This document shows, piece after piece, positions 1 through 36,172 of a stretch of 64,000 bases of DNA; position 1 is the stretch's first letter, and each line of letters starts with the position of its first letter. Under the pieces are notes generated by a model that worked only from the letters and a program-made list of their open reading frames with translations, ran no database searches and had not been told where the DNA came from. Source of the DNA: Ranitomeya imitator (taxonomy: Eukaryota); contig NC_091291.1 of the NCBI RefSeq assembly GCF_032444005.1, positions 137,826,001-137,890,000 on the forward strand, read 5' to 3'. A program made the position numbers and the translations under genes.

Positions 1-1
1 T

Positions 2-7669: not shown

Positions 7670-8850
7670 ACGATCTGCTACTTGTCCGCTTCTGGCTTCC
7701 AAGACTTCTGATACTTGTCCGTCTGTGGCTTCCCGGACTTCTGCTATGTGTACGACTGTGGCGTCCAGAATGTCTGCTGTCCACTTGCGGCTTCCAGTGA
7801 TATTGCTACCTACCGGGGGTCTCCAGGATAACTCCTGTCTGCTTGCATATTCCAGGACCTCATTAAGACTTTTAGTTTTTCTCTGCTAATTGTCCGTCTT
7901 GTGCCTTTCATGACATCTGCTGTCTGCTTGAGGCTTCCAGGACTTCTGCTACATGTCTGCCTGTGGCTTTCATGATGTCTCCTAGCCACTTGTAGTTGCA
8001 GTAACATTCCTACTTGTCTGTGGTCTCCAGGATGTCCATTGTCTGCCTGCAGCTTCCAGAACTCTGCTACCTGTCTGCGGTCTCCAAGACATCCCCTGTC
8101 TACCTGCAGCTTACAGTAACTCTTGTTACCTCTCTGCTGTCTCCAGGGCATCTCCTGTCTGCCTCTGGCTTCGAGTAAGTCTGCTACCTGTCTGGGGTCT
8201 ACAGGATGTCTCCTGACCGCCTGCAGCTTACAGGAACTCTGCTAGCTATTAGTGGTCCCCAGGACATCTCCTGTTTGCCTGTAGACTTCACTAACTCTGA
8301 TACCTGTCTGTGGTCTCCAGGACATCTCCTGTTTACCTTTGGCTTCAAGTAACTATGCTACCTGTCTGTTGTCTCTAGGATGTCTCCTGACTGCCTGCAG
8401 CTTACAGTAACTCTGATACCTATTTGTGGCCTACACGACGTCTCCTGTCTGCCTGTAACTTTCAGTAACTCTACTACCTGTCTCTGTTCCCCAGGATGTC
8501 TTCTGTCTTCCTCAGGCCTCCAGTAACTCTGCTACCTGTCTGTGGTCTCCAGAATGTCTCCTGCCTGCTTGTGGCTTCCAGCAACTCTGCTACCTGTCTG
8601 TGGTCTCCAGAATGTCTCCTGCCTGTGGCTTCCAGTAACTCTGCTACCTGTCTGTGGTCTCCAGGACGTCTCCGGTCTGCTTGTGGCCTCCAGTAACTCT
8701 GCTACCGGTCTGTGGTCTCCAGGACGTGTCCTGTCAGCCTGCAGCTTCCAGTAACTCTGCTACCTGTCTGCGGTCTCCAGTCTGTCTGTGGCTTTAAGTA
8801 ACTATGCATGTGGTCTCCAGTACATCTCCTGACTGCCTGTGGCTTTCAGG
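7670..8850. repeat. Degenerate ~58-bp minisatellite
   Basis: Recurring ctctgctacctgtctgtggtctccaggacatctcctgtctgcctgtggcttccagtaa with many substitutions. Confidence 0.75.
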
Positions 8851-9211
8851 GTATCCAAGTGGGAATATGGCCATACAGCTTATAGGGTCATTACTTAACT
8901 GCCCCATTGCCACCCCAGGCTGCTAGAAGGAGTTATATAGTGATAAAGAACCCCTATAAATGATAATGTGCCTTAAAGCATGTCACAACAAGTGTTGACC
9001 AGACATGAACAAGGAGAGACCAAGTCTGCATGGAGGACTAGGGATGGTGGGGGGATGCTGCTGCATGCTGCCTAGAGCTGCACTGGTAATTACATGGCAC
9101 TACTCCGAACGTCCCTAGTGACCCCCCATTGCTTTTTCTCACAGATACATAGCGGGTCACAACAGCTGTGCCGATAAATCACCCTTGAATCCTCAGTCTT
9201 GCAGCAATATC

Positions 9212-9283: not shown

Positions 9284-9418
9284 CTAGACTTCGATCGTCA
9301 CGCTGCTGTTGGTCATCCGGGCTCCATACCAGCCCTTCCAGTAAACCGCGTCTTGTCCGCTGTGAGTGAACTGGATGAAACGCACTCCGGGGCCATATTC
9401 TGAGAAGGTATGGCTGAT
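9284..9418 (-). CDS. fbxo2: fbxo2 coding exon 5 (last)
   Basis: ctgcag|ATC acceptor. Encodes ISHTFSEYGPGVRFIQFTHSGQDAVYWKGWYGARMTNSSVTIEV*. The YWKGW motif is diagnostic of FBXO2/Fbs1. Confidence 0.92.
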   Translation of the reverse strand: MSHTFSEYGPGVRFIQFTHSGQDAVYWKGWYGARMTNSSVTIEV

Positions 9419-9484
9419 CTGCAGAATAATCATCAGTCAGTGACCATAGGTTGAGAGAAATCACAAAAAGAATGGCTGTCATCT

Positions 9485-9600
9485 TTCAAAACAGCGCCAC
9501 TCCTGTGCACAGGTTGGCTGTGATACTGCAGCTCAGTCACATGTTCTTCTAGTTACAGGACCAGACAGAACCTGTGGACGCGGATGGCGCTGCTTGTGTA
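9485..9600. mobile_element. Short palindromic MITE-like element, same family as 17045-17165
   Basis: acagcgcc...cacaggtt...gcagctcag / ...aacctgtggac...ggcgctg inverted arms. Confidence 0.45.
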
Positions 9601-10299
9601 AGACAGTGAACATGCCTATATAATGAAAAGTTCAGCAACTTTCTAATGTGACTTATTCTTCAGTTTTCAATGTCTGGTTGTCTAATCTCCGCCAGTGCTG
9701 CCATCGAGGCTCCTGATAGCACCAGGATTAGTATTCCTACAGGTAATACAAGACACAGGGCGCCATAAATAATGCAGGGGCGTGAATATTTCATCCATGT
9801 CCCCAGGATGCTGCAGATCATTGCTTCCTAAGTCTTCTCAGCTCCTGATAGACCCCGATAAATAACCCACGTGACCTGAAACACCCGAAAAATGTATTCG
9901 ACAGAATAGAAATGACTGTATCTGATGAAGATCTGGTGAGGAGGCTGGCATGTACCCTGCCGCGGCTCCGGTGGGGGCGCCTTGTTACCCCCGCCAGTGT
10001 CCGTGTGTAGGGGTCTCTACTGCGGATCGGCGCCCCGAATGTGAACCATTGTTTTCTATATATTCTGGCTGGAGCAGATTATTGCTCTTCATCAGAAAAT
10101 ATTTCTATCCAGAAAAATACATTTATCGGATGTTTTCATTTTTATGACATTTTAGAGTGTGAGACGACACTGACCCCCCCGAGCCGGACTCACTGAGCTG
10201 ATAGACCCCAATAACCCTCCATTTATTATGAGCTGTGATATAGTCCAGGTCTGAGGGTCCTGGAAATGAGAGGAGAGCAGCAAGACTGGGACCTCAGGG

Positions 10300-13200
10300 G
10301 CTGTGTATCTAATCCTATCCTGTGTGATACTCTCTGCTGAGCCGTGTATCTAATCCTATCCTGTGTGATACTCTCTGCTGAGCCGTGTATCTAATCCTAT
10401 CCTGTGTGATACTCTCTGCTGAGCCGTGTATCTAATCCTATCCTGTGTGATACTCTCTGCTGAGCCGTGTATCTAATCCTATCCTGTGTGATACTCTCTG
10501 CTGAGCCGTGTATCTAATCCTATCCTGTGTGATACTCTCTGCTGAGCTGTGTATCTAATCCTCTCCTGTGTGATACTCTCTGCTGAGCCGTGTATCTAAT
10601 CCTCTCCTGTGTGATACTCTCTGCTGAGCCGTGTATCTAATCCTCTCCTGTGTGATACTCTCTGCTGAGCTGTGTATCTAATCCTCTCCTGTGTGATACT
10701 CTCTGCTGAGCCGTGTATCTAATCCTCTCCTGTGTGATACTGTCTGCTGAGCCATGTATCTAATCCTCTCCTGTGTGATACTCTCTGCTGAGCCGTGTAT
10801 CTAATCCTCTCCTGTGTGATACTCTCTGCTGAGCTGTGTATCTAATCCTATCCGGTGTGATACTCTCAGCTGAGCCGTGTATCTAATCCTATCCTGTGTG
10901 ATACTCTCTGCTGAGCCATGTATCTAATCCCATCCTGTGTGATACTCTCTGCTGAGCTGTGTATCTAATCCTCTCCTGTGTGATACTCTTTGCTGAGATG
11001 TGTATCTAATCCTATCCTGTGTGATACTGTCTGCTGAGCTGTGTATCTAATCCTATCCTGTGCGATACTCTCTGCTGAGCTGTGTATCTAATCCTCTCCT
11101 GTGTGATACTGTCTGCTGAGCCATGTATCTAATCCTCTCCTGTGTGATACTCTCTGCTGAGCCATGTATCTAATCCTATCCTGTGTGATACTCTCTGCTG
11201 AGCTGTGTATCTAATCCTCTCCTGTGTGATACTCTCTGCTGAGCCGTGTATCTAATCCTCTCCTGTGTGATACTCTCTGCTGAGCCGTGTATCTAATCCT
11301 CTCCTGTGTGATACTCTCTGCTGAGCTGTGTATCTAATCCTCTCCTGTGTGATACTCTCTGCTGAGCCGTGTATCTAATCCTCTCCTGTGTGATACTGTC
11401 TGCTGAGCCATGTATCTAATCCTCTCCTGTGTGATACTCTCTGCTGAGCCGTGTATCTAATCCTCTCCTGTGTGATACTCTCTGCTGAGCTGTGTATCTA
11501 ATCCTATCCGGTGTGATACTCTCAGCTGAGCCGTGTATCTAATCCTATCCTGTGTGATACTCTCTGCTGAGCCATGTATCTAATCCCATCCTGTGTGATA
11601 CTCTCTGCTGAGCTGTGTATCTAATCCTCTCCTGTGTGATACTCTTTGCTGAGATGTGTATCTAATCCTATCCTGTGTGATACTGTCTGCTGAGCTGTGT
11701 ATCTAATCCTATCCTGTGCGATACTCTCTGCTGAGCTGTGTATCTAATCCTCTCCTGTGTGATACTGTCTGCTGAGCCATGTATCTAATCCTCTCCTGTG
11801 TGATACTCTCTGCTGAGCCATGTATCTAATCCTATCCTGTGTGATACTCTCTGCTGAGCTGTGTATCTAATCCTCTCCTGTGTGATACTCTCTGCTGAGC
11901 CGGGTATCTAATCCTATCCTGTGTGATAATCTTTGCTGAGATGTGTATCTAATCCTATCCTGTGTGATACTGTCTGCTGAGCTGTGTATCTAATCCTATC
12001 CTGTGCGATACTCTCTGCTGAGCTGTGTATCTAATCCTCTCCTGTGTGATACTGTCTGCTGAGCCATGTATCTAATCCTCTCCTGTGTGATACTCTCTGC
12101 TGAGCCATGTATCTAATCCTCTCCTGTGTGATACTCTCTGCTGAGCCGTGTATCTAATCCTATCCTGTGTGATACTCTCTGCTGAGCCGTGTATCTAATC
12201 CTATCCTGTGTGATACTCTCTGCTGAGCCGTGTATCTAATCCTATCCTGTGTGATACTCTCTGCTGAGCTGTGTATCTAATCCTATCCTGTGTGATACTC
12301 TCTGCTGAGCTGTGTATCTAATCCTATCCTGTGTGATACTCTCTGCTGAGCTGTGTATCTAATCCTATCCTGTGTGATACTCTCTGCTGAGCCGTATATC
12401 TAATCCTATCCTGTGTGATACTCTCTGCTGAGCTGTGTATCTAACCCTATCCTGTGTGATACTGACTGCTGAGCTGTGTATCTAACCCTATCCTGTGTGA
12501 TACTGTCTGCTGAGCTGTGTATCTAATCATATCCTGTGTGATACTCTCTGCTGAGCCGTGTATCTAATCCTATCCTGTGTGATACTCTCCGCTGAGCCGT
12601 GTATCTAATCCTATCCTGTGTGATACTCTCCGCTGAGCCGTGTATCTAATCATATCCTGTGTGATACTCTCTGCTGAGCCGTGTATCTAATCCTATCCTG
12701 TGTAATACTCTCTGCTGAGCCGTGTATCTAATCCTATCCTGTGTGATACTGTCTGCTGAGCTGTGTATCTAATCCTCTCCTGTGTGATACTCTCTGCTGA
12801 GCCGTGTATCTAATCCTCTCCTGTGTGATACTGACTACTGAGCTGTGTATCTAACCCTATCCTGTGTGATACTGTCTGCTGAGCCGTGTATCTAATCATA
12901 TCCTGTGTGATACTCTCTGCTGAGCCGTGTATCTAATCCTATCCTGTGTGATACTCTCTGCTGAGCTGTGTATCTAATCCTATCCTGTGTGATACTCTCT
13001 GCTGAGCCGTATATCTAATCCTATCCTGTGTGATACTCTCTGCTGAGCTGTGTATCTAATCCTATCCTGTGTGATACTGTCTGCTGAGCTGTGTATCTAA
13101 TCCTATCCTGTGTGATACTGTCTGCTGAGCCGTATATCTAATCCTATCCTGTGTGATACTCTCTGCTGAGCCATGTATCTAATCCCATCCTGTGTGATAC

Positions 13201-15930
13201 TCTTTGCTGAGATGTGTATCTAATCCTATCCTGTGTGATACTGTCTGCTGAGCTGTGTATCTAATCCTATCCTGTGCGATACTCTCTGCTGAGCTGTGTA
13301 TCTAATCCTATCCTGTGTGATACTCTCTGCTGAGCCATGTATCTAATCCCATCCTGTGTGATACTCTTTGCTGAGATGTGTATCTAATCCTATCCTGTGT
13401 GATACTGTCTGCTGAGCTGTGTATCTAATCCTATCCTGTGTGATACTGACTGCTGAGCTGTGTATCTAACCCTATCCTGTGTGATACTGTCTGCTGAGCC
13501 GTGTATCTAATCATATCCTGTGTGATACTCTCCGCTGAGCCGTGTATCTAATCCTATCCTGTGTGATACTCTCTGCTGAGCCGTGTATCTAATCCTATCC
13601 TGTGTGATACTGACTGCTGAGCTGTGTATCTAACCCTATCCTGTGTGATACTGTCTGCTGAGCTGTGTATCTAATCATATCCTGTGTGATACTCTCTGCT
13701 GAGCCGTGTATCTAATCCTATCCTGTGTGATACTCTCCGCTGAGCCGTGTATCTAATCCTATCCTGTGTGATACTCTCCGCTGAGCCGTGTATCTAATCA
13801 TATCCTGTGTGATACTCTCTGCTGAGCCGTGTATCTAATCCTATCCTGTGTAATACTCTCTGCTGAGCCGTGTATCTAATCCTATCCTGTGTGATACTGT
13901 CTGCTGAGCTGTGTATCTAATCCTCTCCTGTGTGATACTCTCTGCTGAGCCGTGTATCTAATCCTATCCTGTGTGATACTGTCTGCTGAGCTGTGTATCT
14001 AATCCTCTCCTGTGTGATACTGACTACTGAGCTGTGTATCTAACCCTCTCCTGTGTGATACTGTCTGCTGAGCCGTGTATCTAATCATATCCTGTGTGAT
14101 ACTCTCTGCTGAGCCGTGTATCTAATCCTATCCTGTGTGATACTCTCTGCTGAGCTGTGTATCTAATCCTATCCTGTGTGATACTGTCTGCTGAGCTGTG
14201 TATCTAATCCTATCCTGTGTGATACTGTCTGCTGAGCCGTATATCTAATCCTATCCTGTGTGATACTCTGTGCTGAGCTGTGTATCTAATCCTATCCTGT
14301 GTGATACTCTCTGCTGAGCCATGTATCTAATCCTATCCTGTGTGATACTCTTTGCTGAGATGTGTATCTAATCCTATCCTGTGTGATACTGTCTGCTGAG
14401 CTGTGTATCTAATCCTATCCTGTGCGATACTCTCTGCTGAGCCGTGTATCTAATCATATCCTGTGTGATACTCTCCGCTGAGCCGTGTATCTAATCCTAT
14501 CCTGTGTGATACTCTCCGCTGAGCCGTGTATCTAATCCTATCCTGTGTGATACTCTCTGCTGAGCCGTGTATCTAATCCTATCCTGTGTGATACTGACTG
14601 CTGAGCTGTGTATCTAACCCTATCCTGTGTGATACTGTCTGCTGAGCTGTGTATCTAATCCTATCCTGTGTAATACTCTCTGCTGAGCCGTGTATCTAAT
14701 CCTATCTTGTGTGATACTGTCTGCTGAGCCGTGTATCTAATCCTATCCTGTGTGATACTCTCCGCTGAGCCGTGTATCTAATCCTATCCTGTGTGATACT
14801 GTCTGCTGAGCCGTGTATCTAATCCTCTCCTGTGTGATACTGACTGCTGAGCTGTGTATCTAACCCTATCCTGTGTGATACTGTCTGCTGAGCCGTGTAT
14901 CTAATCCTATCCTGTGTGATACTCTCCGCTGAGCCGTGTATCTAATCCTATCCTGTGTGATACTGTCTGCTGAGCCGTGTATCTAATCCTCTCCTGTGTG
15001 ATACTGACTGCTGAGCTGTGTATCTAACCCTATCCTGTGTGATACTGTCTGCTGAGCCGTGTATCTAATCATATCCTGTGTGATACTCTCCGCTGAGCCG
15101 TGTATCTAATCCTATCCTGTGTGATACTCTCCGCTGAGCCGTGTATCTAATCATATCCTGTGTGATACTCTCTGCTGAGCCGTGTATCTAATCCTATCCT
15201 GTGTGATACTCTCTGCTGAGCCGTGTATCTAATCCTCTCCTGTGTGATACTGTCTGCTGAGCCGTGTATCTAATCCTATCCTGTGCGATACTCTCTGCTG
15301 AGCTGTGTATCTAATCTCATCATGTGTGATACTCTCTGCTGAGCTGTGTATCTAATCCTATCCTGTGTGATACTCTCTGCTGAGCCGTGTATCTAATCCT
15401 ATCCTCTGTGATACTGTCTGCTGAGCCGTGTATCTAATCCTATCCTGTGCGATACTCTCTGCTGAGCCGTGTATCTAATCCTATCCTGTGTGATACTCTC
15501 TGCTGAGCTGTGTATCTAATCCTATCCTGTGTGATACTCTCTGCTGAGCTGTGTATCTAATCCTATCCTGTGTGATACTCTCTGCTGAGCCGTGTATCTA
15601 ATCCTATCCTCTGTGATACTGTCTGCTGAGCCGTGTATCTAATCCTATCCTGTGTGATACTCTCTGCTGAGCCGTGTATCTAGTCCTCTCCTGTGTGATA
15701 CTGTCTGCTGAGCCGTGTATCTAATCCTATCCTGTGCGATACTCTCTGCTGAGCTGTGTATCTAATCTCATCATGTGTGATACTGTCTGCTGAGCTGTGT
15801 ATCTAATCCTATCCTGTGTGATACTCTCTGCTGAGCCGTGTATCTAATCCTATCCTGTGTGATACTGTCTGCTGAGATGTGTATCTAATCCTATCCTGTG
15901 TGATACTGTCTGCTGAGCTGTGTATCTAAT
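10300..15930. repeat. 41-bp satellite, about 137 copies, in the last fbxo2 intron
   Basis: Unit gtgtatctaatcctatcctgtgtgatactctctgctgagcc; period of 41 counted directly. Confidence 0.97.
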
Positions 15931-16636
15931 CCAATCATCTGATACTGACAGCTGGGCCGTGTATCTCAGCACAGTTTCTTGTGGAGTACTTTGGGTACTT
16001 CCGGTGTAAGATTCATCCTTTATATAAATCCTGACGTCAGAAAAGAGGCTGAAACACGATGGAGATGAATCACTGATCGGCCGATAACGGCGGAAATTGC
16101 AGCAATGAAATCTCCCCGGATCCCGACTGTGGGAACAGGGAAGGAAAATATCTGCAGAACTCATTAAAAAAATCTCCCAACTTCCTATTTATTAGACTTG
16201 CACTTTGGCTGGAATAAACCTGTGTGATTTCTACGGGACGATGCGATAATGACATTCTTCCACTAGGTGTCGCTGTTGTACACTTTTCTACCTTGATGCT
16301 TCTGGGGTGCAGTGTTGTGGGGTCTGTGTATCTAAGCTGTTGTGTGATACCTCCCCGCACATTAAGGCCTCATTCAATGTCCGATTCTCTCATGTGTGAG
16401 AAAAATGAGCCCGTTATTTTGATCAGACTTTGGTCCGTTATTCTCGTATGTGCAGAAAAAGTTCTCCGCCTTCTCCTAAGTGACAATCCGTGAAAATCGT
16501 ATTCAGATGTCGTCTGATTTTTTTTTCTCAGACCCATTGACTTGCGATCAGCTCAAAAGCGGACATGTCTCAGACAGCGCTCGTACGTGAACACCGGGCG
16601 TGTGCCCGAGCTGACGGGTGGGCGCCATTTCCTCAC

Positions 16637-16772
16637 CTGGTTCCAGGCGCCGTCCGTGTTCTCGGGGACGGTGATGTTCTCACTGCAGTATTCACTGATG
16701 ACATCACGGCTGTCGGACAAGAGCTGCGCTCTCAGCTCATAGCAGCATCCACAGTCAGTCCGCGCCCCATAC
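16637..16772 (-). CDS. fbxo2: fbxo2 coding exon 4
   Basis: ttgcag|G...CAG|gtgagg, 136 nt. Encodes (W)YGARTDCGCCYELRAQLLSDSRDVISEYCSENITVPENTDGAWNQ. Confidence 0.92.
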
Positions 16773-16889
16773 CTGCAAGCAGAGGCACTCAGCTTTCCCA
16801 GGCTCCTGAGTGGCCAGCCTAGTAATACACCCCTCCCCATACATAGCAGACAGCAGTCAGGCGGCATTCCTGGACACCAATCATCTCAC

Positions 16890-16982
16890 CAGTCGCTGAC
16901 CACAATGTTGGGTTGGGCGTCCAACACTTCCTCGGTAAATCCTTCCTGAAGGAGATCGATCAGTTGGGATTTTTTGCACAAC
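16890..16982 (-). CDS. fbxo2: fbxo2 coding exon 3
   Basis: ttctcag|G...TG|gtgaga, 93 nt. Encodes (E)LCKKSQLIDLLQEGFTEEVLDAQPNIVVSD(W). Confidence 0.92.
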
Positions 16983-17044
16983 CTGAGAAGAGAAGATCTC
17001 CATCAAATGGATTGTACAGGGGAAAAAAAAGATCAGTTTGCTTC

Positions 17045-17165
17045 TAAAAACAGCGCCCCCACGTGTCCACAGGTTGTATCTGGTACCGCAGCTCAGCAGC
17101 ATTGAACTGAACGTGACAGCGCTGCAGTACCAGACACAACCTGTGGACGACTGTGGCGCTGTTCC
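17045..17165. mobile_element. Short palindromic MITE-like element (~120 bp)
   Basis: gtccacaggttgtatctggtaccgcagc is near-complementary to gctgcagtaccagacacaacctgtggac, flanked by acagcgcc/ggcgctgt. Confidence 0.6.
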
Positions 17166-17200
17166 TGTACAGTCCCTTTAATTCTTAGTCGGTCACTTAC

Positions 17201-17327
17201 TCAAAGGACGTAACAAAGTACTTGGAGACCCCGTCAGACGGAAACGGCGCCCCGCAGTCCCCCGGGAGGTCCTCCACCTTCCACTCGTCTCCTCCATTCT
17301 CTACTAGTTCCCAATGCTCCAGGCCCT
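17201..17327 (-). CDS. fbxo2: fbxo2 coding exon 2
   Basis: gtacag|AG...GA|gtaagt, 127 nt. Encodes (E)GLEHWELVENGGDEWKVEDLPGDCGAPFPSDGVSKYFVTSF(E). Confidence 0.92.
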
Positions 17328-18057
17328 CTGTACACAGAGAACACACAATGCGCAGGGCGGCAGGTACAGGAATATGATAGATTAGGGGGTCCGCCAGCTT
17401 TATTTGTTTGGGGTCTTATATATATATATTACTTAAAGGGGTTGTCCATCTTATAAACATTTTGAACCAAAGTTCGATAAAATACCAACTGCCGGCGCAC
17501 TCGACCCAGTAGATCTTCATCACTGCAGCATGGAGTGACGGCAGCCCCTATGACAGTCACATGGTGACGGATTGGCTGCAGCGGTCAGGCGACTAGAATG
17601 TATATATATAATGAAAGGTAAGGGTGTGGAAGAATGGAAGCGTCAGGTAAGAAGTTATATACGTGGTCTTCTTGTATGGGGGGAATAGTAACCGCTGCTG
17701 TCAGTCAGTGCGGCCCACCCGGGTGGTAAAAAGGGGCCCAAGTTTAAGGAATGGCCGACCTAATATTCCACCTCATGTCATGGCGGAACGTTTGGAGCCC
17801 GACACGGAGCGACCTCCTTCATCGTTCTTAGGTCTCGTGTTTCTGGGATTATTGACCATTATGATGTTTGATCTTGTAAAGTTCCGGTAAAGTCTCCACG
17901 ATGAGGACTGAGAATGAGGTGAGGACCCTACTAGCAGCTCAGTGTATCTCAGCATGCCGGACCCCTGTATGTGGCCTGGGGGGCTACGAGATGGATATTT
18001 GGGCTATGAAATGTCTTATTTTTCTTATATTTCCGCATTTTTTAGTGTTGCACTTAC

Positions 18058-18094
18058 CTTCTCCGCACGGGTTTTTAATGAGATTTTTCGCCAT
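18058..18094 (-). CDS. fbxo2: fbxo2 coding exon 1 (MAKNLIKNPCGE), no F-box upstream
   Basis: ATG at 18094-18092; G|gtaagt donor in phase with the next exon. In-frame TAA at 18121-18119; acceptor ctttctttccacgccgtttag ends at 18123. Total CDS 528 nt = 175 aa. Confidence 0.85.
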
Positions 18095-20164
18095 TTTTCG
18101 GTATTCTCGACTGCGGCGTTATCTAAACGGCGTGGAAAGAAAGGGTTAACGCTGTCAGCGAAGCTCGAGCGCTGTCGGGGGCTGACGGTCTGCGCAGATC
18201 CCACCCCGAGGACGTGTTACAATGGAAATTCTCGCTTCGTTACAATGTATCAGCGGAGGTCATCGGCCCACCCAGATACATTGCACCAAACTCACAGCGG
18301 GACGAAGCAGCCAGGAACGGTTTTAACACTTTAGATACTAATAAGAAGGTTTCAAATCACTGACAGCAACCAGAGATTTTGGAAATAATGAGGCGCGACC
18401 CCCCTGACCCCCAACATCTGCAGCAACAACAACTATTATATAGAATTGCCCCAAGACTGGCGGAAAACCCGTAACAGAAGGGCATGTGTGTACGCAGGAT
18501 CCGGCGTCAGATGTAGCAGAGCTGAAACTGCTCTCAAAGTCTTAACTATCAGCAGGAAAACTGGCAGTCCTGTGCAAATCTACAGAGATGACAAACTAGA
18601 GCAGAAGTAGCAGAGAGATTAATTGATCGGACACTTTACATAGGACTGCAGGTTTGCGTACCGCTTTATTTTATCTCAAATATGCACGAAATAAGTAAAT
18701 GACAAACTCGTCTCTGCTACATCTGTACATGCAATGATTGATCTGCAGGATCTACTCACTGGCAGGACAGACGGGCCGAGCTGAAGGGCGTCCGGAGCGG
18801 CTCCCTGCGCCGTCTTCCCAGGACTTTACACTCGACAGTCTGGAGGCTGCACCGTAATGTGACATCGGAAGCTGCCAACCTCCTCCCTGCACCATCCTGC
18901 AGACAAAGCATCTGCGCAGGCGTGGCCCGGCAGGGCTGCGGACCCCGTCCTCATATTGATCCGACAAATCACCGGCCAAGAAAAATGCAGCAGCCGCCAC
19001 CACGGGCAGCGGAGACCACGTCTGATCTGAAAATCCTGTTCTCTCCGAAACCAGATAGGACTACGGAATGCCAAAATAAATGAATGCCGCCTAATAACCT
19101 TCAGCTCACCCCGAATAATCGGCCAACAAGCAACATGGCCCCCGATCCAGCTCCCACCAGGGGTCCCACTGACTAGTGATGCTGATGCAAGTGATTTATC
19201 TGTTCACCTCTAAAAAAGAATCGCCATTCCTAACTCTGAAAAAGTTGGGTCATCAATTTTGTAACGTCGGCCATGTTCGATGTCAAAAGTGGCGTAACGC
19301 GAAGCCCCCCAACTATCAAGGGTCAATAACAGTAGTATCTGGCACATAGCTTTGGTTATGATTGGCCAGCTCAGACAATACACAGGTTTGGCCACAAGGT
19401 GGCAGCCAAGGAGAATGAATAGAAAAATGTTGCAGGTTTTTTAGACCCAGGGCTGGACTGGCCGTCGGCAAATCGGGCAAACTCCAGATGGGCTGCACCG
19501 GCCATGAGTTATATTGATTGTGACACTTAACAGACAAAAATTAACAGCTGTGGAGGAGCAAAGGGCCGTTGGCTCCCGGTTTTGTCACTTACTCCGGCAG
19601 GATTGAGGCTTCCTTCTTCTGGGTGGGGTGTTGACATCACTGCCCATGCAGGCCCACTGTGGCTGCGGTGGACGGGCATCAGGAGTACCTATAACTAATA
19701 GTTTCTTTTTTTTACATTTTCTTATATTATTGGGTCTGGGGGTTGGATGGTTGGGGACATCATACTGTACGGGGGGCTGTGGGGGACATAATACAATATA
19801 TAAGGAGCTCTGCAGCCATCATACTGTAGGGTGGGCTGTGGTCACCGTACTGTGTGGGGGGTTGTGGTGACCATTATATCAGCATACCATGTGAGGGTCT
19901 ATTGGGGCCATTATACTGTGTACGTGGAGGAGTGTGGGGACATCGTAGTGTGTGGGGACATTTTGGGGGCATCATACTCTATTGGAGGTCGTGAAAGGGG
20001 TATCATAGTGGGTGAGAACACTAAGGGGCTTCAGTAAGAGCAAAATAAGTGTGGAAGTGCCGCAATACATGTCCCTCAGCTGTGTGCCATTACTGAACTG
20101 AGGAGCCCTGTGATTTCTATATACGCTCCTGCTCAGGGGCATCATTACACTAAAGAGGCACTGG

Positions 20165-21793
20165 GGGGATTATTATAAGGAGGCACAATGAGGGGATCAC
20201 TCACTATAGGGAAAGCACAGGGGGTTTGTATTACTATAAGGTGGTACAGAATCATTATTATTATAAGGGGTCACAGGGTTATTATTATAAGGGTCACAGG
20301 GGAATTATTATTATAAGGGTCACAGGGATTATTATTATAAGGGGTCACAGGGGGATTATTATTATAAGGGGTCACAGGGGGATTATTATTATAAGGATCA
20401 CAGGGGGATTACTATTATAAGAGTCACATGGGGATTATTATTATAAGGGGTCACAGGGGAATTATTATTATAAGGGGTCACAGGGGGATTATTATTATAA
20501 GGGTCACAGAGGGATTATTATTATAAGGGGTCACAGGGGGATTATTATTATAAGGGTCACAGGGGGATTATTATTATAAGGGGTCACAGAGGGATTATTA
20601 TAAGGGTCACAGGGGAATTATTATTATTATATGGGTCACAGAGGGATTATTATTATAAGGGGTCACAGGGGAATTATTATTATAAGGGTCACAGGGGGAT
20701 TATTATCATAAGAGTCACAGGAGGATTATTATTATAAGGGGTCACAGGGGAATTATTATTATAAGGGTCACAGGGGGATTATTATTATAAGGGTCACAGA
20801 GGGATTATTGTTGTAAGGGGTCACAGGGGGATTATTATTATAAGGGTCACAGGGGGATTATTATTATAAGGGGTCACAGGGGGATTATTATTATAAGGGG
20901 TCACAGGGGGATTATTATTATAAGGGGTCACAGGGGGATTATTATTATAAGGGTCACAGGGGGATTATTATTATAAGGGTCACAGGGGGATTATTATTAT
21001 AAGGGGTCACAGGGGAATTATTATTATAAGGGTCACAGGGGGATTATTATTATAAGGGTCACAGGGGGATCATTATTATAAGGGGTCACAGGGGAATTAT
21101 TATTATAAGGGTCACAGGGGGATTATTATCATAAGAGTCACAGGGGGATTATTATTATAAGGGGTCACAGGGGAATTATTATTATAAGGGTCACAGGGGG
21201 ATTATTATTATAAGGGTCACAGAGGGATTATTGTTATAAGGGGTCACAGGGGGATTATTATTATAAGGGTCACAGGGGGATTATTATTATAAGGGGTCAC
21301 AGGGGGATTATTATTATAAGGGTCACAGAGGGATTATTATAAGGGGTCACAGGGGGATTATTATTATAAGGGTCACAGGGGGATTATTATTATAAGGGGT
21401 CACAGGGGAATTATTATTATAAGGGTCACAGGGGGATTATTATCATAAGAGTCACATGGGGATTATTATTATAAGGGGTCACAGGGGAATTATTATTATA
21501 AGGGGTCACAGGGGAATTATTATTATAAGGGTCACAGAGGGATTATTATTATAAGGGGTCACAGGGGGATTATTATTATGAGGGTCACAGGGGGATTATT
21601 ATTATAAGGGGTCACAGGGGAATTATTATTATAAGGGTCACAAGGGGATTATTATTATAAGGGTCACAGGGGGATTATTATTATAAGGGTCACAGAGGGA
21701 TTATTATTATAAGGGGTCACAGGGGGAATTATTATTATAAGGGGTCACAGGGGAATTATTATTATAAGGGTCATAGGGGGATTATTATTATAA
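20165..21793. repeat. ~27-bp minisatellite (ggggtcacagggggattattattataa), left block
   Basis: Directly visible array. It resumes at about 25595-25713 and 26470-26640 after the inserted elements. Confidence 0.95.
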
Positions 21794-21974
21794 TAGTGCG
21801 TCCGGAAGACTAACCGCTGTGCTGCAGAGGGTGACCGCAGCCGGTGTACACTGGACGCCGACAATGGTCACAGGTGCCTCGGCCGGACGCACGGTGTATG
21901 CGGCGGAAATGGGATGGACGGGTTGCGGAGAGACATCACCGACTGAGAGGACGGGTGCGCAGAAGGAACAAGAA

Positions 21975-22016
21975 ACCAACGCGTTTCCAGGGACAGCAAC
22001 CCTCTTCATCAGGGGA
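21975..22016 (-). ncRNA. Minimal type I hammerhead ribozyme motif in the Penelope terminal repeat
   Basis: Minus strand reads UCCC-CUGAUGA-AG-AGGG(UUGCUGU)CCCU-G-GAAA-C(GC)G-UU-GG: both conserved cores, a 4-bp stem II, a short palindromic stem III and a GUU triplet. Confidence 0.68.
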
Positions 22017-25190: not shown

Positions 25191-25713
25191 ACTGAGAGTA
25201 GAATACTGAGTCACCCTCTGCAGCACAGCGGTTATTCTTCCGGACGCAGGCGCACCGCTTGTCGTTCCCACACCCTGGATCAACACAGTGAGCACCGCCT
25301 GAAACCTGACTAACCACACGAGGTTACCGCCATCAAAGCCTGTTAGATCCTCCCACGGATATTAACCACCGAGTCCACCATATTTTATACAGACAATTCA
25401 CTACGAATACCTACTGTGCTGTTACTAGGGGCAACCTAACAGGATTCTATATCCACCTCTGAATAACAGTGCCACTCATCAGATCCGTCCTTTTGGCATA
25501 ACCGCAGTAAGTTTCTCTTCATTTACATATTTAATATCTTCACAATTTGGCTTTACACATGTATGGAGCAGCGCGGTAATATATTCTTGTTTTTTTAGGA
25601 TTATTATTATTATAAAGGTCATGAGGGGATTATTATTATAAGGGTCACGGGGATTATTATTATAAGGGGTCACAGGGGGATTATTATTATAAGGGGTCAC
25701 AGGGGGATTATTA

Positions 25714-30036: not shown

Positions 30037-30295
30037 ATGAGCAATATGGACGCCATCCCGGAAGGAGTCCTGCTAGAAATCCTGTCTGTCGTCCCTGCGC
30101 CCGATGTGATCCGTCGCTGCCGCCCGGTCTGCGCCCTCTGGAGAGACATCATAGACTCGCCCGCTCTATGGAAGAAGAAGTGTCAGCGGGACGGGTTTGT
30201 ATCAAGGCGCTGCAACCGTAACCCGCCGGACTGGAAGATGTTCTACTTTCTACATCTGTGGAAGAAGAACTTGCTAAAGAACCCGATGGCTGAAG
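30037..30295 (+). CDS. fbxo44/fbxo6: FBXO44/FBXO6-type protein, coding exon 1 (F-box)
   Basis: Acceptor cccag ends at 30028. Encodes MSNMDAIPEGVLLEILSVVPAPDVIRRCRPVCALWRDIIDSPALWKKKC...WKMFYFLHLWKKNLLKNPMAE; G|gtcaga donor. Confidence 0.92.
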
Positions 30296-30840
30296 GTCAG
30301 ATGGAAATATAGGGAGGGGGTTGGCTGCAGGTCAGATGGAAATATAGGGAGGGGGCTGGCTGCAGGTCAGATGGATATACAGGGTGAGGAGTGGGCTGTC
30401 TGCAGGTCAGATGGATATATGGAGTGGGGAGGGTGCTGTCTGCAGGTTAAATGGATATATAGCGTGGGGAGGGGGCTGGCTGCAGGTCAGATAGATATAT
30501 AGAGTGGGGAGGGGGCTGTCTGCAGGTTAAATGGATATATATTATGGGGAAGGGTCTGGCTGCTGGTCAGATGGATGTGCAGCGTGGGGAGGGGGCTGGC
30601 TGCAGGTCAGATGGATGTATAGCATGGGAAGGGGGCTGGCTGCCGGTCAGATGGATGTACAGTGTGGGGAGGGGGCTGGCTGCAGGTCAGATGGATGTAT
30701 AGCATGGGAAGGGGGCTGATTGCAGGTCAGATGGATGTACAGTGTGGGGAGGGGGCTGGCTGCAGGTCAGATGGATGTATAGCGTGAGGAGGGGGCTGGC
30801 TGCAGGTCAGAAGGATCTATAGCGTGGGAAGGGGGTTGGC
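30290..30840. repeat. ~40-bp G-rich minisatellite starting at the exon donor
   Basis: Unit tgcaggtcagatggatgtatagcatgggaagggggctggc; period of 40 at 30601, 30641, 30681 and onward. Confidence 0.88.
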
Positions 30841-31829
30841 TGTATTCAGCATCGGGACGTTTTATGCGCCACAAACCTCTTCTTGATACTTAAAGATGTC
30901 ACATCCCAGCACAGGCTACACCAGACAGGATCCAAATTCATTTTAGGGTCAGATTTAGTTTTGGGGTTCTGGGCTTGGGTCTAAATTTTTTTTTTTTTTA
31001 ACCTCTTTTTATTTTAAACTGGGCCATTCCAGTAGCAGAAGTGTTGTGTGCGGCACTGTATTGCGGGTTATTGGTTTCTGCATTATACGGTATGTGATGG
31101 AACAGCCATTTTTACTACTAACTTACCGAGCCCATTAGCCTTTAGCTGTTCCTGCGTGCATCGCTCGTATAACGTGGCCATATTGTGCTGAATGGGCTGT
31201 TCCCAATACTGTTAGTTATTCCCCTATCGGTAGGATGCTGTGGCCGGCAGCCCCATAAACTGAGGCTGAGCATTTATGGCAGTCAAACAATAGCAAATAC
31301 CGCCATACAGTGCCCCATTAGCCCAAATAATACTGCTATAGAGCATCCAGAAAATACCATGGTACCAGAGCCAAATATGAGCAAACTGACAGAACCGTGC
31401 CCAAATAATGCTGCTGTATGTTGTCTAATATTGCCATACAGTGCAAGTGGCATTTTTCCTAAAACCGCCGAGTTTCTGGGAAAGGCGGGCGACAGCCAAT
31501 ATGGCCGCCATTACAGGTTACTGCAGCTGCCACCGTTCTATGTATCCGATCCGTCCTCCTCCCCGGTTATCATATTATCCATACAGAGGTTGGGTAATTC
31601 CCGGGTGACCATCGTGTGGGAGCGGCGGCCACGCGGGATCTTCCTAGAAGCGGTCATTATTTCTAAGTATGAGGCCGTGGCGGATTTCTAAGCGGGTGAC
31701 GACCGGTTGGGGACTTGTTAGTTTCCGCTTCTTCCTCTCATACACTCAGTGAAACCAAAAAAATCACAAAAGGAAACGACCCGGAGCTTTCACTCTTATG
31801 GCTCCAGGACTGATGGAAGTGGATGATGC

Positions 31830-32400
31830 CGTCCTGACGCCCCCATCTTCCGCTCCGTCTTTGCCGCTCCGTCCTGACGCCGCTGTCTTTGCCGCTCCGT
31901 CCTGACGCCGCTGTCTTTGCCACTTCGTCCTGAAGCCGCCGTCTTCCGCTCCATCCTGATGCCCCCGTCTTCCACTCCGTCTTTGCCGCTCCGTCCTGAC
32001 GCCGCCGTCTTTCCCGCTCCGTCCTGACGACGCCGTCTTTCCCGCTCCGTCCTGACGCCGCCGTCTTTCCCGCTCCGTCCTGACGCCGCCGTCTTTCCCG
32101 CTCCGTCCTGACGCCGCCGTCTTTCCCGCTCCCTCCTGACGCCGCCGTCTTTCCCGCTCCCTCCTGACGCCGCCGTCTTTGCCGCTCCCTCCTGACGCCG
32201 CCGTCTTTGCCGCTCCCTCCTGACGCCGCCGTCTTTGCCGCTCCCTCCTGACGCCGCCGTCTTTGCCGCTCCCTCCTGACGCCGCCGTCTTTGCCGCTCC
32301 CTCCTGACGCCGCCGTCTTTGCCGCTCCCTCCTGACGCCGCCGTCTTTGCCGCTCCCTCCTGACGCCGCCGTCTTTGCCGCTCCCTCCTGACGCCACCGT
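31830..32400. repeat. 28-bp CpG-rich minisatellite ending about 25 nt before an acceptor
   Basis: Unit ccgccgtctttgccgctccctcctgacg. Confidence 0.93.
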
Positions 32401-32424
32401 CTTTTATATGTTGTTTCTTATCAG

Positions 32425-32551
32425 AAAACTTCAAGCACTGGAAAAAAGATAAAGATGGGGGAGACCGATGGAAGGTGGAGTTGCTGCCTGGGACCCACGG
32501 CCGGCCGCTGCCAGATGATAAAGTGACCAAGTATTTTGTCTCCTCTTACGG
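32425..32551 (+). CDS. fbxo44/fbxo6: FBXO44/FBXO6-type, coding exon 2
   Basis: tatcag|AA...GG|gtacgt, 127 nt. Encodes (E)NFKHWKKDKDGGDRWKVELLPGTHGRPLPDDKVTKYFVSSY(G). Confidence 0.92.
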
Positions 32552-32739
32552 GTACGTTCATAGCGCCACATCCTCCGGCGGCTCCACCAATCCCTGCAAA
32601 CTGCGCTCTTATCCTGCCGCCTCCAAGAACTTTAGGAGTTTTTTTGGGGGGTGATTGGCAGGATGAGTTGTAGTAGTTTTGTACGACTCCTTTCATTTTT
32701 AGGTATAATGTACTGAAAAAACGTAGAAAAAAGTCCTAA

Positions 32740-33178
32740 GGCCGGGGTCACACTAGCGTATGGCATGTGATGTGAGCGCATCGGGTGCGATATGCTAATG
32801 ACCCCCGGCTCCTGCTCTGCTGCGAGCGTGAATCGAGTGTCATGCGTCTGTGTGCCGAGCCTCTCGCAGGGAGCGGATCCGAGCACAGCGGCGGAGGAGG
32901 CGGAGAAACGAATTTCTCCATCTCCTCCATTGCCGGGGTCAGCGTATAACGCACAACACTCGGATGATATCGGAGTGATGTGCGCCGTCTCACTCGCACC
33001 CATAGGCTTATGTAGGTGCGAGTGAGCAGAGACTCGGCCGAGTGTCCGTGATGCTGCGATTTCACTCGCACACTGAAAACGGCTGAGGACAAAAATGGTG
33101 ATGGGAGCTGCCCCATAGAGGAATACTGGTCCGACGGCTATGCACTCGTCCGTATTACGCCGTAGTGTGACTCCGGCC
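32740..33178. mobile_element. PIF/Harbinger-type MITE
   Basis: taa|ggccggggtcacact ... agtgtgactccggcc|tta. Confidence 0.8.
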
Positions 33179-33542
33179 TTAGTGTGATTAAGATGGTTAC
33201 GAAAGACAGTTTTTTTATCTTTGCAATTCTGCCATTATTTTGGGGATTTTTGTTTTTCAACTGTTTATTGTGCAGGAAAGACCTGCCTTCTCCTGGTCAG
33301 TGCGATTACAGCAATTCCAAACATAAGATATCATTTTTAAATACAGTATAATATAATTTTACAGGTTAAGAAAAAAACAAACAGAACTTGACCTAAAAAT
33401 GTATTGCATTTTTTTTTTTTTTTTTGGGGGGGGGAGGGGGGGAGTTACTTTAAGGGTTAAAAAAGCTTATATTTTGATCTGCCTTTTACTTTTTAAAATT
33501 TCCTTTTTTTTAATATTGGTTTTAAACTCTATTTTTAATATA

Positions 33543-35000
33543 CACTGCTCAAAAAAATAGCAGCACACTTAAACAACAGATTATAACTCCAAGTAAGGCT
33601 GCTTTCACACTTCAAGTTTTTTTGCAATCGTCATTTTCCGGATCCGGCACCTTCCGGCTCCCATAGGCTTCCATTCTAACAAACAGCCGGAATCGCTGGA
33701 TCCGACGCTTCCGGCTTTTTCACCAGAGACAAAAAACGTTGCTGTGGACGTTTTTATTCCAGAAACCGGAAACGGCAGATTTGCCGGATCCAGCGAAAGC
33801 CGGACGAAACGCAATGTCATCCGGCACTAATGCAAGTCTATGGGAAAAAAACTGGATCCGGCAGCAACATTCGCCAGATCCGGTTTTTTTAAATTTAGCC
33901 GGATTTAGCCTAACAGTGAAAGCCTGATGTGTGAAAGTAGCCTTAATTAAACTCCTGTGAAATCAAACCGTCCACTTAGGAAGCAACACTGTTTGACAAT
34001 CAATGTCACATGCTGCTGTGCAAATGGAATAGACAACAGATGGAAATTATTGGCAATTATCAAGACCCCCTCAATAAAGGAGCGGTTCTGCAGGTGGGGA
34101 CCACAGACCACATCTCAGTACCAATGCTTTCTGGCTGATGTTTTGGTCACTTTTGATGATGGTTGTGCTTTCACACTCGTGGTAGCACGAGACACTCTAC
34201 AACCCACACAAGTGGCTCAGGTAGTGTGGAGACGCCGTGGAGAGCGATCTGCTGCCTGCAACATCCTTCAGCATGACTGGTTTGGCAGTGGGTCAGTAAT
34301 GGTGCGTGGTGGCATTTCTTTGGGGTTCGCACAGCCCTCCATGTGCTCTCCAGAAGAAGCCTGACTGCCATTAGGTACCGAGATGAAATCCTCAGACCCC
34401 TTGTGAGACCATATGTTGGTGCGGTTGGCCCTGGGTTCCTCCTAATGCAGGGCAATACCAGACCTCATGTGGCTGGAGTGTGTCAGCAGTTCCTGCAAGA
34501 TGAAGACATTGAAGCTATGGACTGGCCGCCCGTTCCCCAGACCTGAATCCGATTGAGCACATCTGGGACATCATGTCTTGCACCATCCACCAACGTCACG
34601 TTGCACCACAGACTGTCCAGGAGTTGGCGGATGCTTTAGTCCAGGTCTGGGAGGAGATCCCTCAGGAGACCATCCGCTGCCTCATCAGGAGCATGCCCAG
34701 GCATTGTAGGGAGATCATACAGGCACGTGGAGGCCACACACACTACTGAGCATCATTTCCTTGTCTTGAGGCATTTCCATTGACGTTGGATCAGCCTGTA
34801 ACTTCATTTTCCACTTTGATTTTGAGCATCATTCCAACTCCAGACCTCCATGGGATATTAGTTGTGATTTACGTTGATCATTTTTAGGTTTTATTGTTCT
34901 CAACACATTCCACTATGTAATGAATAAAGATTTACACCTGGAATATTTCATTCAGTGATATCTAGGATGTGGGATATTAGTGTTCCCTCTATTTTATTAG
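33543..35000 (+). mobile_element. Internally deleted Tc1-family transposon relic
   Basis: TA|CACTGCTCAAAAAAATA left end. Broken DDE remnant: HDWFGSGSVMVRGGIS, YRDEILRPLVRP, LLMQGNTRPH, MDWP, then SPDLNPIEHIWD after a frameshift. Right TIR is partial. Confidence 0.85.
33597..33942. mobile_element. PIF/Harbinger-type MITE nested in the Tc1 left end
   Basis: taa|ggctgctttcacac ... gtgtgaaagtagcc|tta; same TIR family as 23923-24331. Confidence 0.82.
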
Positions 35001-35443
35001 ATTTTTTTTTTTTTTAGGCCTACAGAGGGGACATAAACCTCCTATCGTTTTTACTCGTTATTGCTTTTCGATATAGTAAAGTTATCGATCTCCGATGAAG
35101 CCAATCCACAGGCTCAGCTTCATAGGAAGCACCAAGATGGCGGCAGCAAAGTGAACCCTCAGTTAGCCCCCAGCAGCCATGGCAACCCACCGGATCCCCG
35201 CGATCTCTGGAGAGATCACACGTGTAGTTGTTCTCTCTTTATTGCCGCTGTCGGTAATTGTGGTTACGAGCGGATTTATAAATTCCTGAGGCCGGACAGT
35301 GGTCGCCTCCATGTGAGAGCGGCTGCATACTCAGTCACCCAGGCTTCCTGGCAATATGTTCTCACTTCTTGCTCCTCCTCTTTGTCAATTTCCCATTGGC
35401 CCCTCCCATTATTATTATTATTTATTATTATTATTATTTCCAG

Positions 35444-35539
35444 AATATGTTTGAAGTCGCAGACCATCGATCTGAAGAAGGAAGGCTACCCCGCGGAGTT
35501 CATGGACATCGTGCAGCCCAGTATAATCGTCAGGGACTG
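35444..35539 (+). CDS. fbxo44/fbxo6: FBXO44/FBXO6-type, coding exon 3
   Basis: ttccag|A...TG|gtacgt, 96 nt. Encodes (G)ICLKSQTIDLKKEGYPAEFMDIVQPSIIVRD(W). Confidence 0.93.
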
Positions 35540-35660
35540 GTACGTGGTCGTTTTTATTTTTCATTGTTTTTTTTTTTTTTCTTTTTAAGGAATCTGTTTG
35601 ACAACTGATACGGCCGCCATGACAGCACTGTAATGAATGCCTCTCGCCCCGTCACCACAG

Positions 35661-35796
35661 GTACGCCGCCAGACATGACTGTGGCTGCCGGTACCAGATT
35701 CTTGTACAACTTCTGTCACAAGACAAGACGGTGATGGAGGAATTTCGGCCGGAACCGGTGACTATAGAGCAATGGAGTGACGCGGAGTGGGCCCAG
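35661..35796 (+). CDS. fbxo44/fbxo6: FBXO44/FBXO6-type, coding exon 4
   Basis: ccacag|G...CAG|gtaact, 136 nt. Encodes (W)YAARHDCGCRYQILVQLLSQDKTVMEEFRPEPVTIEQWSDAEWAQ. Confidence 0.93.
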
Positions 35797-36022
35797 GTAA
35801 CTATCTGATGTCACCGGGGAGCAGTGATCCATAGCAACCAATCACATTGCTGCTCTTATTCTCCAAACTGTCTCTGAGAAATGAAAGCTGGAATGTGATT
35901 GGTTGTGATGAATCCCCCTCGTTGGGCCCGGGCCGCTGATAAAGGACGGGGTGTATGGACTAATGGGATATGTATAGAACGTTGGGATATTAAAGCTTTT
36001 CTCCTCTCGTTCTTCTGTACAG

Positions 36023-36172
36023 ATTGAATACACCTTCAGTAATTACGGGCCTGGGGTTCGTTACATATATTTCCAACATGGTGGACAAGACACCCAGTTT
36101 TGGGCGGGCTGGTATGGTATTAGGGTGACGAACAGCAGTGTGACCATCGATCCTGGCAATCTCAGCGCGTGA
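36023..36172 (+). CDS. fbxo44/fbxo6: FBXO44/FBXO6-type, coding exon 5 (last)
   Basis: gtacag|ATT acceptor. Encodes IEYTFSNYGPGVRYIYFQHGGQDTQFWAGWYGIRVTNSSVTIDPGNLSA*. Total CDS 768 nt = 255 aa. FBXO44 versus FBXO6 cannot be resolved by eye. Confidence 0.93.
   Translation: MEYTFSNYGPGVRYIYFQHGGQDTQFWAGWYGIRVTNSSVTIDPGNLSA

Follow-up and report, generated by a model that had tools for sequence, protein, structure and literature searches.

In a window of 64,000 nucleotides from the frog Ranitomeya imitator (NCBI RefSeq assembly GCF_032444005.1, contig NC_091291.1, forward-strand positions 137,826,001 to 137,890,000; coordinates below count from the first letter of the window), the minus strand carries an orthologue of FBXO2 (Fbs1) whose 175-amino-acid product is the sugar-binding FBA domain and nothing else, equivalent to about residues 123-297 of the mouse protein. 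The F-box makes the contact with Skp1 in the solved Skp1-Fbs1 and Skp1-FBG3 complexes (PMC4603797). We consider it reasonably probable that this FBXO2 orthologue lost its F-box in place and persists as a cytosolic N-glycan lectin that is independent of SCF, the ubiquitin ligase built from Skp1, Cul1 and a protein with an F-box.

The FBXO2 gene of Ranitomeya encodes an FBA domain without an F-box

Five minus-strand exons, all with GT..AG borders, join into an open reading frame (ORF) of 528 nucleotides (nt), corresponding to 175 codons and the stop codon TAG (Table 1). The ATG at 18094 stands in the context gaaaaATGg, and the exon that contains it is preceded by the acceptor cgtttAG, with the AG at 18124-18123. 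Translated singly, the exons tile the Pfam FBA profile (PF04300) without overlap, covering profile positions 3-17, 20-55, 57-87, 89-133 and 134-175, and single exons find their best matches to solved structures in FBXO2 chains. Of the 7.2 kb of intron 4, 5.7 kb is a 41-bp satellite. In the related FBG3 (FBXO44), the sugar-binding domain has been defined as beginning at the Arg just before NLL (PMC4603797).

The full-length protein (P0448) scores 230.3 bits against FBA, over profile positions 7-175 of 175, and has no match to the Pfam F-box families (PF00646/PF12937) at E <= 0.1, in a scan in which the controls, namely R. imitator P0341, Spea FBXO2 (P0293) and Pseudophryne P0322, do score for the F-box. 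Across the whole 64-kb window, tblastn with 22 queries, namely the N-terminal parts of 21 relatives that have an F-box and the neighbouring gene's own first exon, gave a single F-box match, at 30037-30294 on the plus strand, and none on the strand of the FBXO2 gene. Furthermore, the sequence upstream of the ATG in Ranitomeya (three frames) and Engystomops gave no F-box relic beyond 'RK-MAK' ('...YRK-MAK' in Ranitomeya), and no further FBA exons were found in the window outside the two genes.

A preliminary description of this stretch had proposed the five-exon model, an ATG with a TAA 27 nt upstream and an acceptor directly before that, the conserved motifs YFVTSFE and VYWKGW, and the absence of an F-box remnant upstream, in contrast to a neighbouring paralogue whose exon at 30037-30295 joins an F-box to KNLLKNP. 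The borders, the ORF and every coding junction are borne out by the sequence and by spliced contigs; the start, the stop and the acceptor are seen in the sequence, with the acceptor in use in RNA, and both motifs are present in the protein. Likewise, the reading frames and the tblastn of the minus strand give no remnant, the paralogue exon does hold both elements, and the F-box is confined to that plus-strand gene.

Spliced transcripts support the short first coding exon

RNA data were taken from Logan contigs of four public runs (X1, X3, X10 and X11) from four studies, which were compared with positions 16000-20250. The runs carry no RNA label and their library type is unrecorded; the GT..AG joints mark the contigs as spliced RNA. 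The coding joints 17327>18058, 16981/16980>17201/17199 and 16770>16888 are all found in contigs, and the loose ends at 16637, seen in all four runs, read ATCAGCCATACCTTCTCAGAA..., the start of exon 5. The predicted borders of the ATG exon (18058-18122) are both confirmed: X1, X10 and X11 all splice into acceptor 18122, from 18760 in X1 and X11 and from 19593 in X10, and their spliced contigs also use donor 18058. In X3, the contig stops inside this exon at 18113 and includes the CAG at 18113-18111 as exon sequence. Indeed, the preliminary description had envisaged that an upstream F-box exon might be spliced in frame via this internal CAG (at about 18111); no contig of the four runs uses it as an acceptor, and the contigs contain no transcript with such an F-box exon. 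In the contigs that cover exon 2, its start is joined only to 18058 (four runs). With the TAA contained in the ATG exon, any exon further upstream is cut off from the FBA reading frame.

Transcription of the gene makes use of at least two alternative sets of non-coding 5' exons (Table 1). In X10, a 77-letter loose end at 19695 was read over its first 30 letters, which match 21816-21845 exactly. A Pfam search of the open stretch in the upstream 5' exons gave no family. The X10 transcript starts beside retroelement-like ORFs and a 26-bp satellite and may use a transposon-derived alternative promoter. Run X11 also contains an isoform that skips exon 2 (joint 16981>18058), in which the 127-nt exon is lost and the frame is broken. 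The differences between the contigs and the window at 16720, at 16982 and at one site in exon 5 (TAT>TAC, in the loose end at 16637) are synonymous; position 16982, the first base of exon 3, is polymorphic (C>T on the plus strand, GAG>GAA).

Phylogeny and synteny point to FBXO2

The joined model is identical to R. imitator XP_069597176.1/XP_069597177.1/CAJ0937053.1 (P0448). The gene model is therefore already public in RefSeq, under a name that still says 'F-box'; the locus is annotated, and the FBA-only architecture is widespread in databases. The preliminary description had cautioned that short non-mammalian models might exist, and they do, with the identical RefSeq protein and the same form in about 20 neobatrachians and more than 100 ray-finned fishes.

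From residue 3 to residue 174 the protein aligns, with no large gaps, to mouse FBXO2 residues 125-296 (E = 4e-70), and the identity to a mammalian FBXO2 is 59%, so that the fold is certain from this alignment to the solved Fbs1 domain. The protein scores 238 bits against FBXO2, versus 211 for FBXO6 and 207 for FBXO44, and its identity to FBXO2 proteins is 59-69%. A search of cluster representatives (50% clusters) with exon 5 alone reached 74% identity at best and brought up no closely related frog. In a maximum-likelihood (ML) tree of 61 FBA domains, from which NCCRP1 was left out, the window model falls in a clade of 13 neobatrachian FBA-only proteins (support 100/99*). This clade sits within both frog FBXO2 (99/97*) and tetrapod FBXO2 (98/94*), and the branching order of the genes agrees with that of the species.

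The genomic setting agrees with this placement. Both the FBXO2 gene of Spea (with F-box; locus L002) and the FBXO2-like gene of Mixophyes (without F-box; locus L003) lie head-to-head with an F-box-plus-FBA gene, as in the window; the next gene at the Spea locus is a MAD2L2-like HORMA gene, and in human the order FBXO2-FBXO44-FBXO6 is contiguous (PMC3210139). The coding exons measure 37/127/93/136/135 nt in both the window and Engystomops and 250/127/96/136/135 nt in Spea. In Engystomops, an acceptor and two in-frame TAGs precede the ATG, in the same place as the TAA of the window. Together, the tree, the head-to-head synteny and the position of FBXO2 as the best match among solved structures indicate that the window gene is the FBXO2 (Fbs1) orthologue, as had been proposed from the sequence at the outset.

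Loss of the F-box in neobatrachian frogs

The distribution of the two forms was determined from searches with a salamander-type FBXO2 and the Engystomops orthologue, and the lineages were checked. FBXO2 with an F-box (about 247 amino acids) is present in 11 non-neobatrachian frogs (Ascaphus, Bombina, Discoglossus, two species of Xenopus, Hymenochirus, Rhinophrynus, Pelobates, Spea, Leptobrachium and Pelodytes), in Ambystoma, in Microcaecilia and in amniotes. The FBA-only form, of 172-176 amino acids and starting MA(K/R)NLIKN, is found in all of the approximately 20 neobatrachians sampled, including Ranitomeya (two species), Dendrobates, Phyllobates, Anomaloglossus, Engystomops, Leptodactylus, Eleutherodactylus, Bufo, Hyla, Dendropsophus, Mixophyes, Pseudophryne, Rana, Lithobates and Hyperolius; in Gastrophryne the FBA-only form carries an extension that is not an F-box. 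These carriers cover Hyloidea, Myobatrachoidea, Ranoidea and Microhyloidea, and several frog species have extra tandem copies. The window protein is 100% identical to the R. imitator RefSeq model, 98.9% to R. variabilis XP_077105800.1 and 82% to Engystomops P0383, and the neobatrachian models share with it the start, the five coding exons and in-frame stops 5' of the ATG. On this distribution, neobatrachians and ray-finned fishes are without the F-box, and other frogs, salamanders, caecilians and amniotes have it.

In a gap-free DNA alignment, the neobatrachian ATG-GCN-AAA lies opposite AGG-AAG-AAA (Arg-Lys-Lys) of Spea, so that a single substitution separates the start codon from an Arg codon of the former linker. 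Furthermore, the 72 nt immediately 5' of the ATG in Mixophyes (L003:9929-10000) read in frame QEGLTATTRGAEEDIWIGRCF*KK, where Rhinophrynus FBXO2 has QEGLTMTERDTKPDNWKNVYFLNK; this relic together with the coding part is 53% identical to Rhinophrynus FBXO2 over 36 amino acids, with the stop replacing a Leu. A frame-shifted LVDGASV is also found in Mixophyes (within L003:9904-10000), where the F-box ends ...IVDGADV. The Mixophyes relic is the ancestral exon, decayed in place.

Presumably, the F-box and the linker part of the first coding exon were dropped from the reading frame in the neobatrachian ancestor, and the Arg codon AGG beside the NLIKNP motif turned into ATG. A new acceptor about 28 nt upstream would have reduced the remainder to a short internal exon with an in-frame stop, and the old F-box sequence would afterwards have decayed.

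The glycan pocket and a possible SCF-independent function

In Fbs1, Phe177, Tyr279 and Trp280 are essential for binding of GlcNAc-GlcNAc (PMC4603797). The window protein keeps the pocket, with F54, Y157, W158, K159 and T91 of the model corresponding to F177, Y279, W280, K281 and T215, all identical in mouse and human FBXO2 (Fbs1/FBG1/NFB42/OCP1; PDB 1UMH/1UMI, the sugar-binding domain, residues 117-297, in crystals of its own), which are the same gene by tree and synteny and have the same exon phases. Unlike mammalian FBXO2, the window protein has no PEST region, F-box or linker helix and starts at about mouse residue 123; it also differs from the mouse protein by A217 -> C and N159 -> C, and A217C alone is without effect on binding (PMC4603797). 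Neobatrachians show no variation at W280 or K281, and an alignment of 36 sequences has 32 invariant columns. Pairwise comparison of the window gene with those of Engystomops and Mixophyes, and of these two with each other, gives a ratio of nonsynonymous to synonymous substitution (dN/dS) of 0.11-0.16, at a dS of 0.9-1.1. The intact pocket and these dN/dS values argue for a working protein.

The biochemistry of the mammalian protein is compatible with such an existence. On its own, the sugar-binding domain of Fbs1 (residues 117-297) stays soluble and binds RNase B, whereas that of FBG3 aggregates in the absence of Skp1; Fbs1 also assembles SCF inefficiently (PMC4603797). In the inner ear, Fbs1 is present as a Skp1 heterodimer outside SCF (PMC6389600). 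FBXO2 may be the family member most easily able to do without its F-box. Lacking the F-box and the linker, the window protein would be unable to dock on Skp1-Cul1, and a link to SCF or Skp1 would not be expected. It would instead serve as a free lectin in the cytosol, recognising the Man3GlcNAc2/chitobiose core of N-glycans that come to lie there, with retrotranslocated or denatured glycoproteins and ruptured endolysosomes as candidate targets, and binding would hold or shield these targets rather than lead to their ubiquitination. The structural and evolutionary part of this proposal is well supported; its biochemical part, with Skp1 binding lost, glycans bound and no role in degradation, is what we infer.

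Several points weigh against this proposal. Position 279 is Y, F, C or S among neobatrachians, and F177 varies once (S in Hyla). FBXO44 has Y/Y/W at the pocket positions, yet shows no binding (PMC4603797), and pocket residues are therefore no guarantee. The path from the frog FBXO2 node amounts to a median of 0.34 changes per site in neobatrachians versus 0.17 in other frogs, a descriptive comparison since the tips are not independent, and this approximately doubled length could mean a changed rather than a retained specificity. The Mixophyes relic is better kept than expected for a loss on the neobatrachian stem, which leaves room for later or repeated inactivation or for another constraint, and it is parsimony that points to a single loss on that stem. 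Finally, the contigs show that the forms exist and say nothing on expression level, tissue or true 5' ends.

The strong purifying selection on the whole domain would also fit a degradative role through another partner, in which the domain recruits a different E3 ubiquitin ligase or an autophagy adaptor and serves as a non-SCF targeting receptor. Mammalian FBXO2 is tied to lysophagy and to a CHIP route, and the CHIP contact has been placed in its N-terminal PEST region. That region is absent from the window protein, which is a beta-sandwich alone with no partner motif visible, and we regard this alternative as unlikely.

Ray-finned fishes and the number of losses

The form without an F-box is not confined to frogs. 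About 117 ray-finned 'F-box only protein 2' proteins, from Polypterus and sturgeons to teleosts, are 175-178 amino acids long and FBA-only; they start M-x-(R/K)-NLLKNP and show 55-62% identity with the frog protein from end to end. In Amia the ATG exon is again short and stands behind an acceptor. The zebrafish fbxo2 and Amia P0239 products (about 176 amino acids) share architecture and start motif with the frog protein, but fish fbxo2 has D or Q in place of K281 and often F at Y279, both of which the window protein keeps. At the Amia calva locus (L004:3457-13334), two FBA-only genes (180 and 177 amino acids) lie head-to-head, so that the neighbour of fbxo2 is also without an F-box. Zebrafish fbxo2 has been cloned as a 534-bp sequence, and its 20-kDa protein gives a single western-blot band; the same study still places Fbxo2 in the ubiquitin pathway via skp1 (PMC13375457).

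In the tree, the fish proteins form their own clade (100/100*) beside the F-box-bearing FBXO2 of Callorhinchus, and a minimum of three changes of F-box state is required. The F-box was probably lost separately in neobatrachians and in ray-finned fishes, which is the better supported history, although unproven; it is favoured by the topology, the synteny, the frog-type relic and the many losses that would be needed otherwise. We propose, tentatively and at somewhat less than an even chance, that the F-box was shed twice, on the neobatrachian stem and on the ray-finned stem, with the same cut before NL(L/I)KNP, and that the bare domain was kept under purifying selection each time.

Alternatively, the gene without an F-box could be an ancient paralogue common to ray-finned fishes and neobatrachians that results from one old loss. 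The two groups do agree in their start, M-x-K/R-NL(L/I)KNP, in a short ATG exon that follows an acceptor and in a length of 175-177 amino acids, and an approximately unbiased (AU) test does not reject a single clade of fish and neobatrachian proteins (difference in log-likelihood 12.7, p = 0.12). However, the ML tree places the neobatrachians inside the F-box-bearing frog FBXO2 proteins, with starred support and in species-tree order; the gene has the same head-to-head position in Spea, with the F-box, and in Mixophyes, without it; and the Mixophyes relic resembles the linker of frog FBXO2. Furthermore, the two forms would have to have been lost reciprocally many times, among salamanders, caecilians and amniotes and in every frog lineage outside the neobatrachians. 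Overall, this history is quite improbable.

Improbable alternatives: an overlooked F-box or a decaying gene

An F-box might have been missed if it were encoded by a far-upstream or unassembled exon, or if the first exon of the FBXO44/6-like neighbour were spliced onto exon 2. The phase-1 exon junction is common to all family members, the assembly has a gap (a run of N) in the window at 62669-63430, rare isoforms are dropped by contigs, and in Pseudophryne corroboree a 264-amino-acid model (P0322, 'F-box only protein 2-like isoform X2') has an F-box exon placed before FBXO2-like exons 2-5. However, the N-terminus of P0322, including NLLKNPRALE, is of the FBXO44-like type and near-identical to Mixophyes P0356, rather than of the FBXO2 type, and P0322 is therefore a chimeric or read-through model; as an observation in its own right, it reflects either read-through or chimeric splicing between tandem members or an artefact of gene prediction. 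The window's single F-box exon lies on the opposite strand, the sole joint onto 18058 other than that from the start of exon 2 is the exon-2 skip of X11, and every contig has the TAA or the CAG as exon sequence. Moreover, more than 20 independent neobatrachian annotations begin MA(K/R)NLIKN, and a missed F-box is in our view very improbable.

That the gene is a decaying remnant, either a transcribed pseudogene or a sequence drifting without function after the loss of its F-box, is hardly credible, since the missing family-defining biochemical domain, the approximately doubled neobatrachian branch lengths and the frame-breaking, exon-2-skipping isoform of one run are set against an intact ORF with equal exon sizes in Ranitomeya and Engystomops, the low dN/dS maintained across Hyloidea and Myobatrachoidea, the invariance of W280, K281 and the 32 columns mentioned above, the extra tandem copies retained in several frogs and an FBA-only architecture kept across ray-finned fishes.

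The neighbouring paralogue and other features of the window

The head-to-head neighbour on the plus strand encodes an F-box and an FBA domain, and its product agrees at every residue with R. imitator 'F-box only protein 6' (P0341, 255 amino acids). Its exon phases are the same as those of the FBXO2 gene, and its first coding exon joins the F-box, the linker and KNLLKNP. In the tree it groups with FBXO44-type genes, and it has Y, F, W and A at the pocket positions 177, 279, 280 and 281. The FBXO2 product had been suggested as a competitor of this paralogue, which now seems unlikely, since the neighbour is of FBXO44 type by tree and pocket and no sugar binding has been detected for mammalian FBXO44/FBG3 (PMC4603797). 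Candidates for competition would instead be FBXO6- or FBXO27-type proteins encoded elsewhere. FBXO44 (FBG3) and FBXO6 (Fbs2) share the FBA fold and the exon structure with the window protein but keep the F-box.

The preliminary description had also pointed to NCCRP1/FBXO50 as an F-box-less relative. NCCRP1 is an FBA-domain protein whose fish forms have been described without a detectable F-box, as in the window protein, but it is only 31-36% identical to other family members (PMC3210139) and is encoded at a different locus. The best named relatives of the window protein are all FBXO2 (NCCRP1 itself was not aligned); NCCRP1 is not the relative that matters here.

An acceptor at 30027-30028 precedes the first coding exon of the paralogue, which indicates that this gene also has an upstream 5' exon. 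Directly 5' of the same coding exon lies a G-rich tandem repeat of 1.9 kb (27915-29815; 60/130-bp units, GC content about 0.7, observed/expected CpG about 0.1). Intron 2 of the paralogue contains, at 33951-34746 on the plus strand, a remnant of a Tc1/mariner-type transposase with a weak DDE_3 match (E = 0.0016) at 34513-34746. On the minus strand, 22732-25210 holds long open stretches that are reverse-transcriptase-like and include a GIY-YIG-like motif (GVIYILICPCNKFYEGRTKRR). A Pfam search of these retroelement-like ORFs (22.7-25.2 kb) gave no family at E <= 0.01, and the label 'Penelope-like' for them is a reading of the GIY-YIG-like motif, unconfirmed by Pfam. Rfam at the gathering threshold gave nothing for 16000-31000. 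Long satellites dominate 1-9000 and 38000-62000, with units of 119-128, 58/116, 86, 39, 49, 36/72/220, 23, 24, 51, 30 and 13 bp; the run of N follows at 62669-63430.

Table 1. Coordinates of the FBXO2 gene, its 5' exons, the intron 4 satellite and the neighbouring paralogue in the window
Feature	Position	Strand	Remarks
ATG exon (internal)	18058..18122	-	28-nt leader including the in-frame TAA, then ATG, 12 codons and 1 nt (MAKNLIKNPCGE-)
Coding part of ATG exon	18094-18058	-	from sequence
In-frame TAA	18121-18119	-	inside the ATG exon, 27 nt 5' of the ATG; contigs of three runs reach 18122
Coding exon 2 (127 nt)	17201..17327	-	ends YFVTSF; last F is the counterpart of mouse Fbs1 Phe177
Coding exon 3 (93 nt)	16890..16982	-	Pfam tiling and RNA contigs
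Coding exon 4 (136 nt)	16637..16772	-	carries the beta5-beta6 loop RTDCG
Coding exon 5 (132 nt + TAG)	9284..9418	-	VYWKGW corresponds to Tyr279-Trp280-Lys281 of mouse Fbs1
Non-coding 5' exon	18760..18827	-	5' end undefined; joint 18122>18760 in X1 and X11; donor GTGAGT
Alternative non-coding 5' exon	19593..19694	-	joint 18122>19593 in X10; has upstream ATGs
Further 5' exon of the X10 form	21816..21892	-	read from 21816 to 21845; between the 26-bp satellite and the retroelement-like ORFs; donor GT follows
41-bp satellite (138 copies)	10303..15966	.	occupies most of intron 4
Paralogue (F-box + FBA, 255 amino acids)	30037..36172	+	exons 30037-30295, 32425-32551, 35444-35539, 35661-35796, 36023-36172

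Implications for Fbs1 biology

In the searchable literature, including PMC3210139, PMC4556705 and the review PMC6389600, we found no statement that FBXO2 lacks an F-box in neobatrachians or in fishes, which is weak evidence. The wider pattern is more useful than the single locus: a gene that is named and treated as an SCF receptor is without an F-box in most frogs and in ray-finned fishes, zebrafish included. If N-glycan binding persists in the bare domain, the lectin and ligase functions of Fbs1 are uncoupled in these animals, and this separation bears on the role of non-SCF Fbs1 in the brain and the inner ear. Furthermore, if the two losses are true, the conserved core job of Fbs1 would be that of an SCF-independent lectin or holdase, which fits the poor SCF assembly and the Skp1-only state seen in the mammalian ear. 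Fish and most frogs would then be natural 'delta-F-box' models, and studies in which zebrafish Fbxo2 counts as an SCF subunit would have to be read anew.

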